The position numbers and the translations under genes were made by a program. A stretch of 64,000 nt of DNA from Macrostomum lignano (Eukaryota): the NCBI GenBank assembly GCA_002269645.1, contig NIVC01002013.1:149324-213323 (forward strand). The letters are read 5' to 3'. This document shows positions 3,152-35,744 of the stretch, piece after piece. Under the pieces are notes generated by a model, which had not been told where the DNA came from, did not search any database, and worked only from the letters and a program-made list of their open reading frames with translations. Positions within the stretch are counted from its first letter, which is position 1, and each line of letters begins with the position of its first letter.

Positions 3152-4325
3152 TAGTGACAGAGTGACATGGTGACAGAGTGACATGGTGACAAAGTGACAT
3201 GGTGACAGAGTGACATGGTGACAGAGTGACATGGTGACAGAGTGACATGGTGACAGAGTGACATGGTGACAGAGTGACATGGTGACAGAGTGACATGGTG
3301 ACAGAGTGACATGGTGACAGAGTGACATGGTGACAGAGTGACATGGTGACAGAGTGACATGGTGACAGAGTGACATGGTGACAGAGTGACATGGTGACAG
3401 AGTGACATGGTGACAGAGTGACATGGTGACAGAGTGACATGGTGACAGAGTGACATGGTGACAGAGTGACATGGTGACAGAGTGACATGGTGACAGAGTG
3501 ACATGGTGACAGAGTGACATGGTGACAGAGTGACATGGTGACAGAGTGACATGGTGACAGAGTGACATGGTGACAGAGTGACATGGTGACAGAGTGACAT
3601 GGTGACAGAGTGACATGGTGACAGAGTGACATGGTGACAGAGTGACATGGTGACAGAGTGACATGGTGACAGAGTGACATGGTGACAGAGTGACATGGTG
3701 ACAGAGTGACATGGTGACAGAGTGACATGGTGACAGAGTGACATGGTGACAGAGTGACATGGTGACAGAGTGACATGGTGACAGAGTGACATGGTGACAG
3801 AGTGACATGGTGACAGAGTGACATGGTGACAGAGTGACATGGTGACAGAGTGACATGGTGACAGAGTGACATGGTGACATGGTGACAGAGTGACATGGTG
3901 ACAGAGTGACATGGTGACAGAGTGACATGGTGACAGAGTGACATGGTGACAGAGTGACATGGTGACAGAGTGACATGGTGACAGAGTGACATGGTGACAG
4001 AGTGACATGGTGACAGAGTGACATGGTGACAGAGTGACATGGTGACAGAGTGACATGGTGACAGAGTGACATGGTGACAGAGTGATATGGTGACAGAGTG
4101 ACATGGTGACAGAGTGACATGGTGACAGGGTGACATGGTGACAGAGTGACATGGTGACAGAGTGACATGGTGACAGAGTGACATGGTGACAGAGTGACAT
4201 GGTAACAGAGTGATATTGTGACAGAGTGATATGGTGACAGAGTAACAACGGACAGAGTGACGGTGGACAGAGTGACATGGTGACAGAGTGACAATGGACA
4301 GAGTGACGGTGGGCAGAGTGACATG
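3152..4325. repeat. 16-bp minisatellite (gtgacagagtgacatg)n, about 70 copies
   Basis: Near-perfect tandem array that decays at the right edge. It produces the spurious ORFs at 2989-4427. Confidence 0.98.
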
Positions 4326-7112
4326 GAGACATGCGCATTCTAATGTAAGACGCCTGTGAAATTTGAAATTTTTAGGGAATAAAGGGAATAATGAGAAAGA
4401 ATATTTTAACCAAACTATTAAGTCCACTCGTGCATGCCCTCAATGCAGGTGACGCTACTTAAATACGAAAATACGCAAAATACTAATAAATATTAATCTG
4501 AACGTGTGTCTAGATCTCCAGACCTTAAGGGAATATGCACTACCTGGAATAGTGCATTATTCAATTATTCTTTTTGGCTTGTATATTATAGATAATACGA
4601 GTATATAGTATAGCTACTCGTATTTATGGTTCGTATATTCATAAGTCCGCGGGCCCAGCCCAGTTGCTAGGGTTCACCCAAGCGGAGCAGGGCTAGAAGG
4701 ATTCCCTCCACCATGCAGCCTCAGGCGCATGCCTGACTGACTGCATGACGTGGCGTGAGGCCCGCCAATATAAAAGTGGGGCATTGAAAATCGCCACAAT
4801 GCCAAATATTTTTTTAGAATAAGCCGCTGAGAAGCATCTTTGTGAGTCTGGGTCACGTTATCTACATCTTTGATGCGGAAATCTGTTGGAACTTTTAAAG
4901 AAAGTAAAGCTATTGTGTCGCGAGCTATTGTTGATAAAGGTAGTATTATCGCATCGTTCACTGTGCTCACTCAGTGTGATTCACTACATAGAGAGTGACT
5001 CATTCAGCGTGATTCACTATATGTAAGACTCTGTGTGAGACTCAGTTAGTGTGATTTTTCGTGTGTGATCCATCAGAGTGACTCATCGTGTGTGTGGTTC
5101 ACTCGGTGTGTGTTTATTAGGATGCAATCTACTCACTCACTCATTCACTCATAGTGTGACTCTCACTCAGCAAGATTGCAGCCCGGACAGCATCCCACGG
5201 CTCATCCAGTTCCTTCGGGTGACAAGACGAGCCATTGTCTTCCCCACGGAAGATCACGCTGCAGGACGGACCGGCGGACCACCCTGACCGGCCCCCATGC
5301 CTCTGCCTGTCTGCTGGCCTTCAGGGGCCGGCGGAATGGGCGACCCTCGCCTCCCCGCTGTGTCTACCGACCACCCTGCAGCTGAGTCAAGTAAGTCAGC
5401 AAGATTGACTGTGCGTGGCTCACTTAAGAAGCGCAACTTATTCTTTGTCAAATTGAGTTGCCCCTGGCCCTGTTTCACTCAATGTGACTCACAGAGAATG
5501 GTTAGTGAATTGATAAACGTCACGTGATTGCCATACTTCAGACCAGAAGTTCATTATAATGCCTCCAGAAATTCAGGAAGCTCCCTGTGTTCCTTTCTCT
5601 TATTTTCTTCTGGCAGGCACAGCAGACATGAGGGAAAACTGCCTGCAGGCTATGTGGACAAGAAATGAAAATTTGTTGGCAATCAGAGATTGGCCCCCGA
5701 GGGGAAATGGCTCTCTGCTATCGCTAATGAGGCTGCAGCAGACTTTAGCATCTCAATTTTTCAAGCTAGTATGAATTCATCATTCAATATTCTGTATTAT
5801 TTCTACAATAGTTTGATAACAAATACAGTTTACCAAATCTTTGTAGAATTCTCCGGTAGGCTAATCTCTATAAACTTACAGAAGCCGATCAAACAAGGTT
5901 TGTCAATCTTCAGCCTTTACTCTACGGAAATTCAAACTCAAAGGCAAACCGCCTCACACTCGAAAGCTCACTACAAACGATTTTAGGCCCATAATTGAGT
6001 GTAAAAGAATTAAACTAATAGACAATTATAGATAACTGACCTCAGTTCACGCAGTCTCTCCCTTCACAAAGCACTCAGATCGATGAATATATTATGAAAG
6101 CCAAAAAAGAAAGCTCATTGACCTAAAAAGAAAAACGAGGGAAGCGAAACAGGCTATGATTCTAGAGATATGTATTTTGAGCAGAAGTGCAACTTCGATC
6201 GTTCTGCGATGAAGATCTTTATCGGTACCAACTGTTACACATACTTGCAGTCTTCGGATGAGAATATACGATCGATATTGACGTATTTTGTTTATCATCA
6301 GGCTATTAAAGCATTACCACCTGTGTACAGGTACATCTCTAGCCATGTAAAATGGCTTGAGCTATAAGTGCTGCATGGAGCCAAATGCACTTATATCCAA
6401 CATCTATGCATGCATTGCAAAGATCGAAACAGCCAAGCTTTTATAGACACACGTCACACAATATTGCGTGTAGTTGCAGAACCTCACTCAAAACTGCAGT
6501 ACAGCAAGTTATTCTACATCCTTTTAGTTCCCTTTACCCAGACTCTCGGCCCATTAGCAGCAGCTGTGGCGCTGAACTCATCTTTTAACCGGACTCACGC
6601 GATTACGATCAATAAAAGGTAAACAGAAATTATGCTTCCTGCACGCGATGGTTATATTAAGTGATGGGTACAGATGCATATATATGACGTACACTAATAT
6701 CATCCACTTTAATTTAACTCCGCGTGTATATATTTCTTAATTAATTTTCCCAACTCGCTCATTCTAAACACAATTAATTGACATGTACTTAAAAAAACTA
6801 CTTACAGAACTCATGTATTGTAATTATTATTAATTTGTAAATCATGCTTCTGGCCTATATATACTCGTAAGGTCAAAGCTGCACATGTTTGTAAAGTTAT
6901 ATTATACTTCGATAACTTATAGGTGTAAGCATATAGCACGACTCCCGCCTCTCTACAAGAATGTTACGAGTACAAACCAAAGGATCACTGCACTAGGGCA
7001 TACATAATTACATTAATAGATCATCCATTACGTACTTGCCCTCATCCAGTGTAAAAGTGCGCTGTTGCTGTCACTTCAGGAGAGGACAATCACACATACA
7101 TGTAAGTATAAG

Positions 7113-20329: not shown

Positions 20330-23300
20330 CTATTGAATCATCTTTTTTGGCTCCTTCAGGTTCTGTAAAGCTCAGGGTTTGCGATAGAGAGAGACAGTAG
20401 TTTAACTTGGCCTTGGCTTTACTTTATTGTACAGCACTATCTTCTTGTCTGCATAGCGGCTGCGGGAGGGTCGCTGCTGTTGCTGTTGCTGCTGCTGGAG
20501 CCGCTTGATTTCTGCCAACTGTTTGGGCGACAGTTTGGCCTCCCGTTCGGCGACACGCTGTGCCACCGATTCCGTCAGCTCTTTGAGCTCCGGAAAGTCG
20601 TCGAGATTGTCGATTAGCGGGATCAGCAGTGGCTCGATGCTTGGGTGCTTGCTGGCTGGAATTGGGCGATGCAGGTGAATTGAGACTGCATTCTTGATGG
20701 GCCGAGTGATAGACGGGAATGTACACTCGATTGGGATAGAGAGGCTGTATGTACATTCTTGATAGGCGGAGTGGTGATAGTGAGACTGTACACTCGATTG
20801 GGATAGAGAGGCTGTATGTACATTCTTGATAGGTGGAGTGGTGATAGTGAGACTGTACACTCGATTGGGATAGAGAGGCTGTATGTACATTCTTGATAGG
20901 TGGAGTGGTGATAGTGAGACTGTACACTCGATTGGGATAGAGAGGCTGTATGTACATTCTTGATAGGTGGAGTGGTGATAGTGAGACTGTACACTCGATT
21001 GGGATAGAGAGGCTGTATGTACATTCTTGATAGGTGGAGTGGTGATAGTGAGACTGTACACTCGATTGGGATAGAGAGGCTGTATGTACATTCTTGATAG
21101 GCGGAGTGGTGATAGTGAGACTGTACACTCGATTGGGATAGAGAGGCTGTATGTACATTCTTGATAGGTGGAGTGGTGATAGTGAGACTGTACACTCGAT
21201 TGGGATAGAGAGGCTGTATGTACATTCTTGATAGGTGGAGTGGTGATAGTGAGACTGTACACTCGATTGGGATAGAGAGGCTGTATGTACATTCTTGATA
21301 GGTGGAGTGGTGATAGTGAGACTGTACACTCGATTGGGATAGAGAGGCTGTATGTACATTCTTGATAGGCGGAGTGGTGATAGTGAGACTGTACACTCGA
21401 TTGGGATAGAGAGGCTGTATGTACATTCTTGATAGGCGGAGTGGTAGAGGGGATTGTAATATTCCTGCACGAAAACGAGACGCACGAGTTTGCGTGTAGG
21501 AAAATCATTGTCTTTTGACCATAGACAAAGTCATTACTGCACGGTTTTCGAGAAACGTTAAGAAGAGATGAAAATTGAGTGGAGAGTTTATAGAAAAGTG
21601 TATAAAGCTTATTGACTATGGCGTCTGTAATCGACTCGGCTCTGAATCCTCCATTAATTGATTTTCGCTATGCTACGGTGTCTGGATTAATTGGCGACGA
21701 AATGTTTATTGAAAGTGTGTCCAGCAACTTTGAGAGGACGGGCGACGATTTGACTCCACTGATAGCGGATTGCACGTTCAGCGAGGAATTAGAGAAACTT
21801 TTCAGCTCGGATCCGGAAACCTTGTGTAACCTTGACGAATTGGAAAGTCTGGCCGCTCAACTGGAACGCGACAACGAATGTCATTCGACTGTCTCTAAGG
21901 ATAAAGCTGTGATCAACCGCTTGACGGCCTGGTTGGCGGAGAATAATTTAAAAGTGGATTACGCGACTGCTTCGGTGGAAGAAATTGCCAAATGGGTCCG
22001 CTACTTCTATGCGACTCTGCGTAAGTCAGACGGCAGCTTCTATTCGCCGAATACAATCGTAGGAATTCGAGCCGCACTGTTCAGGTACTTTATGAAATTA
22101 CCTGACCTCAATATCATCGCTCACGAGGCTTTTCATAGCGCGAATTTGATGGTGAAGAATGTTTGCAATGCGTATTTGAAGTCCGGTGGTCGAGTGCAGC
22201 ATTACGAAGCCATTGAGTCGGACGACCTTTTCAAGCTTGCTTCTTACTTCGACAGAAGCACTCCAACACGTTTGCAAGAAGAGGTATATTTCAATGTGTT
22301 ATTTTATTTCGGCAATCGCGGCAGAGAATGGCTACGAGGTCTCACTGTTCGTTCATTCCGAGAGAAGGCCCCATCAAACGGAGCTATGGCGATCGAGTTG
22401 CAAGGCAGCACCTCAAAGCTTTATTTGTCGAAAATTACTGCCGTGCCGGGTTGGAATCAGGAGGACTTCTTTCTGCGTCCGAAACCACGAGTGAATGCGG
22501 ATGGCATCTGGTACACCAAAGTACCAGTTGGAATCAACACTTTGGGGCCGTTGCTCAAGAAGATCTCTTCGAATGCTAACCTGTCCAAGCTGTACACTCC
22601 GCATTGTGTGCGACCTACAGTTGTTACGGAGCTGCATGAAGCTGGCTTTTCTGTCGAAAAAATTGCGAAGGTGACAGGTCACAAGGTGAGCAATTCTTTA
22701 TTCTTAGTAAGTTTATTGACACATGGACAAGGAATTTATTAAACACCACCTCTATTCACAGAATAGCGCGTCGGTAGAACGATACATCCGGAGAGGCAAG
22801 AAGAGGGACTCGATCATGGCAGGGATGAGTGATCAGCTGACAGTCGCTCTAGCTGGAACTATGCCGGCACCAAGTTCTACATTGAGCGAAGCTCCTGCAA
22901 GGGCTGTTACAACTACCGACCCGTGCGCCCTGAGCGACGCTCCTACAAGGGCTGTTGCGACTACCGACCCGTGCGGATCAGCGTCAATGTCAACTGTCAA
23001 GAAGTCACTGGTTGTTGAAGAATCGACCACCACACTTTTAGCAGCCCCCACTAAGCGGATGAAGATTTTGGCAAACGGCAAAACGAATGTTGTGCAGTTT
23101 ATTTTCGAGTAAATGCCGAGAGGGGTGTGAGTAGGTCTATAGACTCATTAACTGTTTCCCTAGTTCCACTTATTATCCTTTTTGTTCTTCCATATTGTTA
23201 TTGATTACATATTCAGTTGCTTCTAAAAAAAAATTGTTAAATCGTGCAGGAATGAAGTCATTCCTGCACGATAAGCTAACGTATGTCAAGTGATTTCTAC

Positions 23301-26300
23301 CATAGACACAGACATTCCTGCACGATAATAAATCGAAAAAAATCATTCCTGCACGCTGTGGTCAAACGACAATGTACACTCGATTGGGATAGAAAGGCTG
23401 TATGTACATTCTTGATAGGCGGAGTGATAGAGGGGATTGTACACTCGATTGGGATAGAAAGGCTGTATGTACATTCTTGATAGGCGGAGTGATAGAGGGG
23501 ATTGTACACTCGATTGGGATAGAAAGGCTGTATGTACATTCTTGATAGGCGGAGTGATAGAGGGGATTGTACACTCGATTGGGATAGAAAGGCTGTATGT
23601 ACATTCTTGATAGGCGGAGTGGTGATTGTGAGACTGTATACTCGATTGGGATAGAGAGGCTGTATGTACATTCTCGATAGGTGGAGTGGTAGATATCTCT
23701 AGGCGGAGTGGTAAATATCTCTAGGCGAGATATGTACACTGTAGTACATGTAGGAGGATAATTAAAAACTTTAAGGAACAAAATACAGTGTACATTGTTT
23801 CTATCGATGCAGGCAGTGGTGAGCACTATAGGGTTCTGATGCTCTCGGTTCTAGGAAATATTGATTTTTTATTCTTATCAATTCGAATGAGATCATTCTT
23901 TGATTAAGCGTTTAAGACTTCCGGGAGTGAACTAAAATTAATCAATCTATGAAAGCTTTTGAACTCCCACCCTTCCTACCTTAGGTACATTAGTTTAAAT
24001 GAAATTAAAAGATACAAAATACTATAGTTATCCAATAAACCTAATTGGAATTGAAAAAAACATTAGAAGCGCTTTTCACTGTAAAGACTTTTATAATACA
24101 AATGATATTCCTGTTGTTGAGTAGTTAATCAGATATATTAAGGAATTTTCCATTTTACTGTACGACCTCCTCTTGTAAGCAATTTAATCAAATCAGAAGT
24201 TAATCCGGCTTTACGTTGAAGAACAATTTGGAAATTAAAATAACTGCGTCTTGCAATAAAGCGTGATAGCAGTTCAAAATGTATTCGAGTGCACTGCAGA
24301 CAGTCATTTTAACACATTTCTCATTCACAGATTTAGACCTTATCTACAGATTTCACATCTACAGATTTCTTATCTGCAGATTTCTCATTCACACATTTCT
24401 CATCTACAGATTTCTCATCTACAGATTTCTCATTCACACATTTCTCATCTACAGATTTCTCATTCACACATTTCTCATCTACAGATTTCTCTCCCAGAGA
24501 TTTGCAATCCCTGCTCACCTTGCAATTTGCACAGAACGACAACATCCCGACTGCCAATCTGATCCGATAGCGATTCGTGATCCTGCAGCTCGGGCAGCTT
24601 GAGCAGTTGGCCACCCACTGTGCTGAGCTCGATGACAGCTGGAATAGGAAAGTTTTTATACATTTTTAGTATGTAGCCAGGCTCTTAAAATTGTGGAAAT
24701 CCTAGATATTTTTATTGTGAAATGCCTGACAGGAAGCTTAGCAAGTTTCAGTGGGAGATTTTTTCCAATCTGACAAATAGTTCGCAGCAGGAGGCAAAAA
24801 AACACGATTACAGCATTTTTCCCATGAACTTATCTCAACAGAATTTTTTCACGCTTGTAGCTGCTACAATCACATGTAAGCAATACAGACAACTCATCAT
24901 CTGTTCGCTGCGTACGAGTACTCGTATACGCAGTAGTGTTATATTTCCACCGAGTTCCTCCGGGAGAACTGTAGCATCCAGCTAGCTAGCTGGTTATGAC
25001 ACCAACACTGCCAACCAACATGCTTGACCTGTCACTACACGTATTGGAAATTTCACCCTACGTCAGTTGCTTACCCGGCTAAAAATAAATAGAATTGAGG
25101 CTTTTTAACGAAACAGATGAGTGAACAGCAAAACCTCAGCAAAATGTTTTTACAGGGCACAAAAGATCTGCTTTGACTCTTTGGACTTTTAATGTATTGA
25201 AAACTAAAAGGGTTACGCAGGATTCTGTTGAGGCACGCAGGGGTCGGAAAAAAGATTGTGGGGAGAGCCAATCAAAGCCACGTACTTTGCACGCAGAGGA
25301 CGGAAAACAGGAGGTTAGCGAGAGCCAATCAAAAGCCACACATTTCACACGCAGAGGGACGGAAAACAGGTTGCGGGGAGAGCCAACCAAAAGCCACGTA
25401 CTTCGCACGCAGGGGATGGAAAACACGGGGTTGGTGAGTGAGAGCCAACCAAAAGCCACGTTACTTCGCACGCAGGGGATGGAAAACACGGGGTTGGTGA
25501 GTGAGAGCCAACCAAAAGCCACGCACTTTGCACGCAGGGGACGGAAAACAGGAGGTTAGCGAGAGCCAATCAAAAGCCACACATTTCACACGCAGAGGGA
25601 CGGAAAACAGGTTGCGGGGAGAGCCAACCAAAAGCCACGTACTTCGCACGCAGGGGATGGAAAACACGGGGTTGGTGAGTGAGAGCCAACCAAAAGCTAC
25701 GCACTTCGCACGCAGGGGATGGAAAACACGGGGTTGGTGAGTGAGAGCCAACCAAAAGCCACGCACTTCGCCCGCAGGGGATGGAAAACACGGGGTTGGT
25801 GAGTGAGAGCCAACCAAAAGCCACACACTTCGCACGCAGAGGGACGGAAAACACGGGGTTGATGAGTGAGAGCCAACCAAAAGCCACGTACTTCGCACGC
25901 AGGGGACGTAAAACAGGGGGTTGGTGAGTGAGAGCCAACCAAAAGCCACGCACTTCGCACGCAGGGGACGGAAAACAGGGTGTTAGCGAGAGCCAACCAA
26001 AAAGCCACGTTACTTCGCACGCAGGGGATGGAAAACAGGGGGTTGGTAAGTGAGAGCCAACCAAAAGCCGCGTACTTCGCACGCAGGGGACGGAAAACAG
26101 GGGGTTGGTGAGTGAGAGCCAACCAAAAGCCACGTACTTCGCACGCAGGGGACGGAAAACAGGGGGTTGGTAAGTGAGAGCCAACCAAAAGCCACGTACT
26201 TCGCACGCAGGGGATGGAAAACACGGGGTTGGTGAGTGAGAGCCAACCAAAAGCCACACACTTCGCACTTAGGGGGTGGGGCGGAAAACAGGGGGACAGA

Positions 26301-34430: not shown

Positions 34431-35744
34431 CGTTTTTAGTAGCATATAGTGCATAATAGTTTAGTAGTAATTTTAAGACTATTTACAAATAGAAAGCAAG
34501 ATATTTGACATAGTGTTAACGAAAACCATCTACTATAATAGCATAGTTGCGGAACAATGATTGAAGCATTGCACGATACGATAACAATTTGTCTATGGCC
34601 ATTAAGATAAAACCTGACTTTACAAAATACAGGACGGCTCATGGCTGAATTATTTGCACAGGCAAGCACAATTAACAATACAAAGCATATGAAAGCTCTT
34701 AAACAAAATTTTAAATACAATAAGAACACTTATCTCAAGCTAAAAGAATGGCCGACTCAAACGATGTCGCCTGTCCAGCATGTCGTTTGATGCTCTCCAG
34801 CGAGAACATAGTTAGACATATTGCCAGCCAAAATGTCAACTTTATCAACGAATTTGACTGGAGCAACGGAACCATTACGTCCGGCTGTTGATGCAACAAA
34901 TCTGCTCAAGGCGAAAGCAATATGGCATTCGTTGAGAGTACAATAGCAACCCGAGACGTCGCGTAACCGTAAAACAAGTGTCGAGGCACATCGTTTGGAC
35001 GTGTGCTCGAAAACCGGCAATCGATGGCACCGGCACCAGACACAACAGTGACGCCGCCGAACTAGATGAGCCCATGCCAGCCGGACCGTCAACCAGCGGC
35101 GTTACAACGGACCATGCGGCAACTCGCGATGAGAATGGAGACATCAGCGTCGACACCAACGTGACAGATGCAGCGACATGCAGCGAGATCGAGCAGCTAC
35201 AACTGAGTCCGCTGATCCCGCACGACAGTCAGAACTAAACATACAAATGTCGAATAGTTCGCGTACGCAGGACTCAGATCGGTCAAAAAATCTACCAAAC
35301 GCAAAACAGCGGACAACGTGGTCGTCTCAATTGCAGCATTAGATGGAGACACAATCAGTGCACCCGTCCGATTGAGCGCTAAGCAGACTGTTCAACAGGC
35401 CAAGGCGACACGGCCACATGGCGACATGACGATGGCGACAAGGAGTCAATGCGACACGACGATGACGGCGGCTGCGTTGACAGACGCCGATTAGAATGCG
35501 GAAGAGTTTTCACGTCGACTGTATGGTAAGAGAGAATATATTTTACATCAATCTGTGCAACTATACAGTAGTAATATACACTCAGCAACATTGAAAAGTG
35601 TCCACGTCTGCACAAAAGGCTACACTAGCTGAACGATTAGGATTGAAAGGTTTTTAACTATGTTTGGGCTATAGACAATCAAAATAAGGCAACAAAGAAT
35701 GAACAGCGAAACAAATCCATGGCCATTTCCATGCTGTGTACGTG

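Follow-up and report, generated by a model that had tools for sequence, protein, structure and literature searches.

Why would a DNA transposon carry, just inside its left end, an inverted copy of the junction that its own two ends would form on a circle? The question is raised by a Crypton element in a minisatellite-rich stretch of the Macrostomum lignano genome (the species is named by protein matches), which was analysed as a window of 64,000 nucleotides. A satellite with a 65-67-bp unit (arrays 20720-21445 and 23373-23693) is interrupted at 21457-23374 by this 1.9-kb element, which lies on the + strand, is counted with one TG (23373-74), and is a defective copy of what is termed family 1. 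An initial annotation had described the segment 21493-21524, site I below, as an internal copy of the circle junction, and had compared it to the internal complementary region (ICR) of DIRS retroelements. Cryptons are to our knowledge the least understood order of eukaryotic DNA transposons, and we know of no transposition intermediate that has been seen. As judged by comparison of copies and relatives, site I is the inner arm of a predicted imperfect palindrome of 120-190 nt, which is split by integration. The core observation of the initial annotation holds, and is stronger and broader than was stated there.

The junction can only be deduced if the ends of the element are known to the base. 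Copies were retrieved via the protein cluster of the recombinase. Family 1 consists of L001, L003 (= L004), L005 and L006, and a second M. lignano family (family 2), with a protein ~50-54% identical to that of family 1, consists of L002, L007 and L008. These represent four independent insertions of family 1 (window = L005; L001; L003 = L004; L006) and three of family 2. L005 is the window locus itself, ~98.4% identical, and has the 53-bp deletion of the window copy without its 102-bp deletion; L001 is 99% identical to the window copy and full-length. The family 1 insertions read, at the left and right end respectively, ggggat-TG-TAatattcc and cgacaa-TG-tacact (window), aaacaa-TG-TAatatt and cgacaa-TG-gaaaca (L001), ggacat-TG-TAatatt and cgacaa-TG-agtaaa (L003), and aagcac-TG-TAatatt and cgacaa-TG-ttccat (L006). 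The TA at the left end is invariant in all four and is therefore element sequence, and since the right flanks differ (they start ta, ga, ag and tt), the TA past the right end of the window copy belongs to the satellite. In family 2, left flanks ending agat, gcaa or agaa are followed by TG-TTaggattc, and the right end is aataagaa-TG, then flank. TG thus flanks both sides in 7/7 independent insertions, with a shared identity of 2-7 bp; the 7-bp case is aagaatg in L008, compared with an empty site in the window.

Two empty sites confirm that the crossover is conservative and takes place inside the shared sequence. The left copy of the TG crossover dinucleotide of the window element (21455-21456, + strand) is part of the satellite target ...ggggatTGtacactcg, as defined by empty units and the four independent insertions; the satellite unit ggggatTGtacactcg is the empty site of this copy, and the empty unit ggggatTGTAcactcg is found at 23433-23448 and elsewhere in the window. 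The family 2 insertion L008 (contig NIVC01002664.1) has its empty site in the window as well, at 35695-35701 (...caacaaAGAATG/aacagcg..., the slash marking the crossover), the filled locus being ...AAGAATG/TTaggattc......tcaaatAAGAATG/aacagcg with flanks 96-99% identical to the window. The initial annotation had placed the element between two copies of TA; with four family 1 insertions, three family 2 insertions and the two empty sites at hand, the actual repeat is TG and the boundaries were 2 bp off. The crossover is typical of a tyrosine recombinase (YR), in that TG is invariant and left flanks partly match the right terminus of the element. This match extends to 19/28 positions upstream of TG (hand count), and an overlap region of ~6-8 bp (acaaTGta or agaaTGtt) that requires TG and tolerates partial heterology fits this resemblance. 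From the TG flanks and the element-owned TA, the circle junction is deduced as ...ctgtggtcaaacgacaaTGTAatattcctgcacg... (in shorter forms ...cgacaaTGTAatattcc... and ...cgacaaTGTAatatt...).

With these ends, the parts of the left end can be named in order. TA (21457-21458, + strand), the first two element bases, has no partner in the internal copy and would be a 2-nt bulge beside the crossover. It is followed by A' (atattcctgcacg; 21459-21471, + strand), the left-terminal copy of an 11-13-nt motif A, which belongs to the outer arm of the palindrome, and by a remnant of the palindrome core (21472-21492, + strand), from which 53 bp are gone between 21479 and 21480 when compared with L001. The deletion takes out a conserved cGAg-stem-GAA-stem-cGAg mini-hairpin present in L001. 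Site I consists of a' (cgtgtaggaaaat; 21493-21505, - strand), an inverted degenerate copy of A', and b (cattgtcttttgaccatag; 21506-21524, - strand), an inverted copy of the right terminus B (ctgtggtcaaacgacaaTG; 23356-23374, + strand), to which b is complementary. The last 6-8 nt of B (acaaTG, plus the left-end TA) are the presumed overlap region. Site I is complementary to the right end at 17/19 positions and to the left end at 11/13. The strings quoted in the initial annotation are exact at the positions it gave, and so is its ungapped 28/32 match; the joined ends it used were short of two bases, hence the comparison with the true junction gives 28/32 plus a 2-nt gap exactly at the junction. 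When the element interior was shuffled 300 times, the best match anywhere, on either strand, was 20/32, so the similarity is not due to chance.

The full-length copy L001 shows what the window copy has lost. Its left 100 bp are an imperfect palindrome A'-core-a', with b directly after it and complementary to B. Its two sites are separated by 74 bp of sequence that is palindromic too; the spacing of about 20 bp given in the initial annotation is an artefact of the 53-bp deletion in a defective copy. On a circle, B-TG-TA-A'-core-a'-b would form one continuous palindrome, and in L001 the crossover point is located in one arm, 19 bp from the outer edge. Junction-spanning sequences were folded with DNA parameters. 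The predicted free energy (ΔG) is -55.4 kcal/mol for L001 (z score -12.0), -56.1 kcal/mol for L002 of family 2 (z -11.1), and -25.5 kcal/mol for the deleted window copy (z -5.1). All three folds are a single hairpin with a 2-3-nt bulge at the junction, and across lineages the predicted single-hairpin folds range from -55 to -70 kcal/mol, with z scores of -11 to -17.

The same layout recurs with different sequences in other lineages, and both sides change together across families. An ICR-like arrangement, in which both termini are complementary to one adjacent internal segment, is real, conserved and co-varying. The hairpin core is common to ten lineages (31-54% protein identity) and the pairing of the ends is readable in eight. 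Relatives beyond the two M. lignano families have 31-42% protein identity and were found in ~2-kb metagenome contigs; L013, L014, L016 and L017, with less than ~250 bp upstream of the open reading frame (ORF), were left out of the hairpin count, and L018 is only a weak homologue. The pairing figures refer only to the right terminus against the segment just inside the palindrome. In family 2 (L002), the right terminus AGAATCAAATAAGAATG (4686-4702) is the exact complement (17/17) of 2892-2908, which directly follows the inner arm of a palindrome with a family 1-type core. The corresponding values are 14/14 in L009, 16/16 in L015, 7/7 in L011, 18/18 in L020a, 12/12 in L021/L022 (two insertions), and 11/11 in L012, with more past a gap. 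The ends of L010, a single copy, are ambiguous, with the right end at 2371 (AATG rule) or at ~2393 (19-nt match to 738-756), and L020b shows only the hairpin, as its contig ends short of the right end. Every readable right terminus ends AAT(G). In 7/7 lineages with both arms readable the internal arm is the shorter one at the junction, by 2 nt (Mlig1, L011, L012, L015, L021), 3 nt (Mlig2) or 7 nt (L009).

The tip of the hairpin is specific to one strand. Tips of the ten lineages were aligned by hand, MAFFT having put three of them (with 5- or 7-bp stems) out of register; pairs were counted formally on the seven in-register lineages and by hand on all ten. On the ORF-sense strand, 10/10 lineages have a GAA, GTA or GTTA loop closed by C·G on a Watson-Crick stem of 5-7 bp with compensatory changes. 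Beyond the stem lies a 2×2 mismatch with 5'-cGA.../...GAg-3' as its context; it is never Watson-Crick, and a C·G pair comes next. The mismatch is a tandem A·G/G·A in 8/10 lineages, with A·A, G·A in L010 and A·G, A·C in L012; a 5'-Y-GA-R-3' context is one in which sheared G·A pairs in tandem are stable. The complementary strand would show TTC, TAC or TAAC loops and C·T mismatches. Among the seven lineages 94.9% of cells are paired and 10/14 pairs have changes on both sides, values that were reached by 0/500 shuffles, while shifted controls were 21-49% paired. The strict tip motif is only found in these elements and only on the + strand (0.0 per shuffled 64-kb window). The tips GCGAAGC, GCGTAGC, GCGTTAGC and CCGAAGG are of the DNA mini-hairpin types GCGNAGC and GCGNNAGC. 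Mini-hairpins of both types, GCGNAGC and GCGNNAGC, are 'extraordinarily stable' as DNA and contain a sheared G·A pair, and their RNA versions are much weaker, with a melting temperature (Tm) of 39 °C vs 76.5 °C (PMC13037366). They are present in single-strand priming origins, GCGTTAGC in phages St-1/α3 and CCGAAGG in RSF1010 ssiA (PMC13037366).

A non-autonomous derivative keeps the same module and little else. L003 carries at 1172-1393 (= L004) a 222-bp element without an ORF, nested at catTG/tc of the internal site of its host. Cutting out this insert restores the host sequence, and its presence accounts for the extra length of the left end in L003/L004. It has TG on either side, starts ATatattcctgcacg, ends ...aatcagccgacaaTG, and contains an internal copy, cattgtcggatgatt, that matches the reverse complement of the insert's right end at 14/15 positions; the insert thus has its own A', a', b and B, changing together. 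As a derivative that does not encode a recombinase keeps just the junction module, the module must sit on the DNA itself for movement. The insert points to a MITE-like (miniature inverted-repeat transposable element) family of non-autonomous elements in M. lignano, and its position shows that integration can target the internal site. The initial annotation had proposed looking for copies integrated through the second site, and such use is seen in another form, with the internal site of L003/L004 as the target of the nested mini-Crypton.

The class of the element is given by its recombinase, the only ORF. It is a single spliced ORF in 1.9 kb (21618-22685 + 22762-23112, + strand), in which tblastn with the full-length relative P0001 places a gt..ag intron (22686-22761) between GHK and NSASVERY; the second exon holds the catalytic tyrosine (VERY) and the C-terminal tail, and the product has 472 aa. 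It matches Pfam Phage_integrase (PF00589, 5.9e-8), and its DUF3504 score is under the Pfam cut-off (21.1 vs 29.7 bits) because of its deletion. This is a 102-bp in-frame deletion between 22418 and 22419, by which 34 aa are lost directly after an invariant lysine (P0001 K267), including the invariant N268 and C295-P296-V297. The closest proteins are 506-aa M. lignano 'ZMYM2-like/QRICH1 C-terminal domain' proteins with PF12012 and PF00589; P0001 and several relatives are annotated with PF12012, and P0001 also with PF00589. PF12012 is DUF3504, a domain that marks CryptonA and the domesticated ZMYM/QRICH1 proteins derived from it. In an alignment of 11 relatives, R236, K267, H363 and R366 are invariant, H389 is nearly so (≥90%), and the (V/I)xRY motif keeps its tyrosine. 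A 48-bp tandem duplication (22883-22975; 1.9 copies, 91% identical) is located in the C-terminal tail of the recombinase and encodes LSEAPARAVTTTDPCA / LSDAPTRAVATTDPCG.

The element encodes no reverse transcriptase (RT) or RT/RNase H, and has no long terminal repeats (LTRs), terminal inverted repeats (TIRs) or long inverted terminal repeats, the outer sequences atattcc... and ...cgacaatg not being mutual inverted repeats. A tyrosine recombinase with DUF3504, one ORF, no RT, LTR or TIR, and short direct repeats derived from crossover, as opposed to a target-site duplication of fixed length, are what defines a Crypton, and the element is a tyrosine-recombinase transposon of CryptonA/DUF3504 type, in line with the assignment in the initial annotation. 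It resembles CryptonA and other DUF3504 Cryptons (Goodwin 2003; Kojima & Jurka 2011, PMC3212892; 'Glomhoppers', PMC13465315) in its single YR ORF with the residues R..K..H-x-x-R..H..Y, the lack of RT, LTR and TIR, the short end repeats that reflect crossover, the length of ~2 kb and the low copy number. Published accounts give Cryptons little else to be recognised by: a short terminal direct repeat has been called 'the only distinguishing feature' (Goubert 2022, PMC8969392), a 'lack of conserved structural features' has been noted (PMC12130899), and in DUF3504 CryptonA a search with many repeat finders detected no repeats (Krysinska 2026, PMC13465315). Unlike animal Cryptons as described in print, which are said to be without terminal repeats or structural hallmarks, the present clade has a 120-190-nt junction palindrome, an array of 11-13-nt motifs and a conserved tip. 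The initial annotation supposed that such a layout had not been described for Cryptons; this stands for the Crypton papers PMC8969392, PMC12130899 and PMC13465315, none of which describes a junction palindrome or ICR-like layout, with Repbase and Dfam outside the comparison.

What could the palindrome be for? We regard it as close to an even call that the module is an attP-like recombination site used as folded DNA, a reading that comes from comparison with known recombination sites. On the circle, B would join the left terminus via TG-TA and run into A', and this stretch would pair with a'-b across the palindromic core, to give one hairpin, or a cruciform, 120-190 nt in length. Inside its stem, 7-19 bp above the base, would lie the crossover (...AATG/), and the opposite arm, being 2-7 nt shorter, would produce a bulge there. 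The folded form could be the ORF-sense strand (a top-strand hairpin) or an extruded cruciform. In either case the internal copy may act as a complementary strand or splint that aligns the ends or gives the junction the form of a duplex-like site in which the overlap is bulged. In a single-stranded integrated copy, A' would pair with a' and B with b, so that ...caaTG/flank would lie beside flank-TG/TA-A' on one splint, and one reciprocal strand exchange would account for the empty site that is observed as well as for the junction as deduced. The exchange would take place at TG and involve partial homology with the target over ~6-8 bp, and the ultra-stable mini-hairpin of the tip could nucleate folding or act as a single-strand priming signal. 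The site might fold in vivo, the recombinase might act on the folded form, and excision, integration or second-strand synthesis might be the step that depends on it. The roles proposed in the initial annotation, guiding circularisation and choosing the crossover, fit the anatomy, and we infer them on that ground.

Folded substrates of tyrosine recombinases are known from bacteria. In CTXφ, two dif-like sites face in opposite directions at a distance of ~90 bp, and their central regions differ in length (12 and 7 nt); on one specific strand they fold into a ~150-nt forked hairpin that is the true attP, and only one strand pair is exchanged (PMC3089051). The Crypton module is like CTXφ attP(+) in its opposed imperfect sites tens of bases apart, with unequal centres and halves that integration separates into non-functional sites (PMC3089051). 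CTXφ differs in being a bacterial filamentous phage that uses host XerC/D and obtains single-stranded DNA (ssDNA) by rolling-circle replication, whereas the Crypton is eukaryotic, has its own recombinase and no known source of ssDNA. Integron attC sites are likewise imperfect palindromes recognised by structure, with one strand used, extra-helical or bulged bases near the crossover, the crossover near the base of the stem, and variable sequence on a conserved fold; they differ in that they are 57-141 nt long, bacterial, and recombined by IntI with attI, and a GNA mini-hairpin tip is undescribed there. Like CTXφ attP(+) and attC, which have unequal central regions or bulged bases at the crossover, the Crypton palindrome has unequal arms: in 7 lineages the difference is 2-7 nt and is located precisely at the junction. 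In IS200/IS605 'peel-and-paste' elements, which move as ssDNA, the ends are defined by subterminal hairpins together with internal guides that pair with the cleavage sites, but these elements are found in bacteria and archaea and their transposase is of HUH (Y1) type instead of a tyrosine recombinase. The single-strand initiation signals of G4/St-1/α3 and RSF1010 ssiA have identical tips (GCGAAGC-type, GCGTTAGC, CCGAAGG; PMC13037366), but these are primase sites on phage or plasmid ssDNA with no known link to recombination.

Several results count against a folded site. The element encodes no Rep or helicase able to make ssDNA; no circle, ssDNA or cruciform was observed, and no circular contigs (terminal overlaps) were present among the ~2-kb metagenome and Logan contigs. 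Three copies have damaged cores: 53 bp are missing from the window copy and 17 bp from L006, and in L003 the core has been replaced. Between the two core strands, the computed folding energy differs by <1 kcal/mol; strand energies are not usable as evidence here, since the parameter set is without terms for GNA loops and tandem G·A, and the strand-specific argument rests on published biophysics, not on the folding computation. A bias of G·T vs A·C mismatches along the long arms was not found (4 vs 5), most arm mismatches being transversions. Palindromic co-variation would also be given by a symmetric array of protein sites in duplex DNA.

This last point leads to a conventional duplex intasome, a reading that we consider credible if somewhat doubtful. 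The 220-275-bp junction region would then be a site like λ attP, with no folding of DNA needed, in which the motif A copies and the B/b boxes are roughly symmetric binding sites of the recombinase or of host factors, and site I is an accessory or decoy that binds and cannot recombine, having a 6-bp instead of an 8-bp spacer. The distribution of motif A ((t)cattcctgcacg) supports this, as A motifs are dense on either side of the junction. Its seven copies are clustered at both element ends (21459, 21493 on the - strand, 21532, 23243 on the - strand, 23259, 23313 and 23344). Apart from A' and a', one copy (cattactgcacg; 21532-21543, + strand) lies 7 nt inside b, one (23313-23324, + strand) follows a partial b-like 'ccatagaca' box as a direct repeat of 21513-21543, and one (23344-23355, + strand) abuts B. 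The remaining two are inverted in a perfect 15-2-15 palindrome (alternatively 11-6-11) at 23241-23272, which has no strand and is also present in L001. The junction has a geometry of 13-8-13 and site I of 13-6-13, the junction region is about the size of λ attP, and the canonical inverted A pair at 23241-23272 and the absence of an encoded ssDNA source would be expected. Such an intasome leaves unexplained that the arms are almost completely complementary over 40-60 nt, and not just in 11-13-nt boxes, and that a C·G-closed GNA/GNNA tip and a 2×2 mismatch occur on the same strand in 10/10 lineages. A palindrome bound as a duplex explains symmetry, but would not explain a strand-specific set of motifs outside Watson-Crick pairing.

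The palindrome at 23241-23272 has the canonical geometry of a tyrosine-recombinase core site and is located ~100 bp inward of the right end; comparable pairs of inverted motifs were observed near the right ends of L010 (2297-2355), L012 (1932-2037) and L014 (1637-1676). By eye, no inverted motif A that would turn the junction into a symmetric core site is hidden in B (3/13 and 5/12 matches).

A stricter analogy with DIRS, in which the internal copy templates or aligns DNA synthesis and the recombinase is needed for integration only, appears improbable. DIRS1-type elements share with the Crypton an internal segment complementary to both termini side by side, and integration by a tyrosine recombinase; they differ in having RT/RNase H (and methyltransferase), long inverted terminal repeats, and an ICR used in reverse transcription. 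The Crypton 'ICR' lies 21-74 nt from the left end (in relatives up to ~100 nt), is part of one continuous hairpin, and belongs to a DNA-only element. With neither RT nor long inverted terminal repeats the element is not a DIRS member, and site I shows DIRS-like working in one respect, not DIRS membership. The DIRS ICR is said to work according to the model of Cappello and of Poulter & Goodwin. Applied here, B would be the 3' end of a displaced strand and would pair with b; extension, or ligation over the splint, would then regenerate or join the termini and yield a circle. The topology equals that of DIRS1, where the ICR is the complement of the two outer termini (PMC13465315), and mini-hairpins of the present type occur at ssDNA priming sites; but the element has no polymerase or RT, and site I is without the 2-7 nt of the real ends, so that copying it would not give the observed termini.

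The hairpin is located 80-300 bp upstream of the ATG and its structured strand is the sense strand, which would suit an RNA structure or transcriptional control, as a hairpin of the 5' untranslated region or promoter or as an operator for autoregulation of the recombinase. We find this quite unlikely. The stem runs across the junction into the 3' terminus of the element, the layout is retained in the 222-bp mini-element without an ORF, and the GAA, GTA and GTTA loops are motifs of DNA stability and far less stable as RNA; the full-length copy had no match in Rfam.

The initial annotation further suggested that the short terminal segment might be inverted. Recombination of the junction with its inverted copy would flip the segment between them, and two similar sites in inverted orientation are indeed present, but such a switch is very improbable: judged by the minimum loop sizes of Cre and Flp, sites 21-74 bp apart are too close for synapsis of two duplexes, the intervening segment is nearly palindromic so that a flip changes little, the spacer lengths differ, the internal site is missing 2-7 nt at the crossover, and all seven independent insertions have one orientation, with no inverted variant among them. 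Chance similarity, or a relic of an old self-insertion, which does occur in the nested mini-element and has nothing further in its favour, is refuted by the shuffle test, by co-variation in eight lineages and the mini-element, and by the core shared in ten.

If the palindrome is used as a folded site, a fuller model can be put forward, though only tentatively. This animal Crypton clade would transpose via folded ssDNA, with the ORF-sense strand splinted by the internal copy, one strand pair exchanged at the bulged TG, and a GCGNAGC-type mini-hairpin priming the second strand; it would be a eukaryotic counterpart of CTXφ attP(+) and integron attC, perhaps ancestral to the DIRS ICR. Among eukaryotic tyrosine recombinases, one that recognises DNA structure in this way would be the first of the attC/CTXφ type. 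The structural tie between Cryptons and the DIRS ICR bears on an older idea that YR retrotransposons arose from a Crypton-like element. The mechanism becomes testable, with respect to a folded or a duplex substrate and to which strand is used, and the circle junction is predicted to the base (...cgacaaTGTAatattcc...). The anatomy also has a practical side. The lack of structural features described in reviews makes the boundaries and the non-autonomous derivatives of Cryptons hard to annotate, and the tip cGA-stem-GNA/GNNA-stem-GAg would supply, on the sequence comparisons given above, the first structural hallmark for this Crypton clade, a sequence-independent mark for CryptonA-like ends and for mini-Cryptons without an ORF.

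A number of further observations concern the locus and the copies. The window (1-64000) has an exceptional minisatellite density: Tandem Repeats Finder (TRF) reported 54 rows, some of them overlapping descriptions of one array, with repeat units of 4-172 bp; many of the arrays measure 0.3-1.3 kb, and they follow one another along the entire window. No further copies of the element were found within the window, the exact matches to 'ttcctgcacg' at 444 and 6636 being isolated. Between the two M. lignano families, ~70 bp of the core are nearly identical (L001 2808-2878 vs L002 2811-2878) despite recombinases that are ~50-54% identical, which reflects either a strong constraint on the DNA or a recent exchange of segments. 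L007 (1383-1453) and L008 (1314-1385) have an extra GC-rich insert of ~70 bp, absent from L002, that contains further hairpins (gcgggggcAGAgcccccgc, gtgggggcGAAgcccccac), one of them with a GCGAAGC tip.

Lastly, some copies lie close to one another or beside sequence that resembles an element end. Two different Cryptons of the clade, at 464-1771 and 3221-4669, are ~1 kb apart on one 4.9-kb metagenome contig (L020), the right flank of L009 repeats the first 6 nt of the left end of the element, and the right flank of L010 carries sequence resembling its own B box. Along with the nested mini-element, these cases hint at preferential insertion into or beside junction-like sequences of other copies. 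In L019 (Logan SRR24204725; 900-974), TAATATTCCT comes directly after the right terminus ...cgacaaT and before unrelated sequence; it is 10 nt identical to the left terminus of the element, as in a junction minus G. The case is ambiguous: the element may have inserted into a pseudo-site resembling the junction, or this may be a footprint or what is left of a head-to-tail arrangement.

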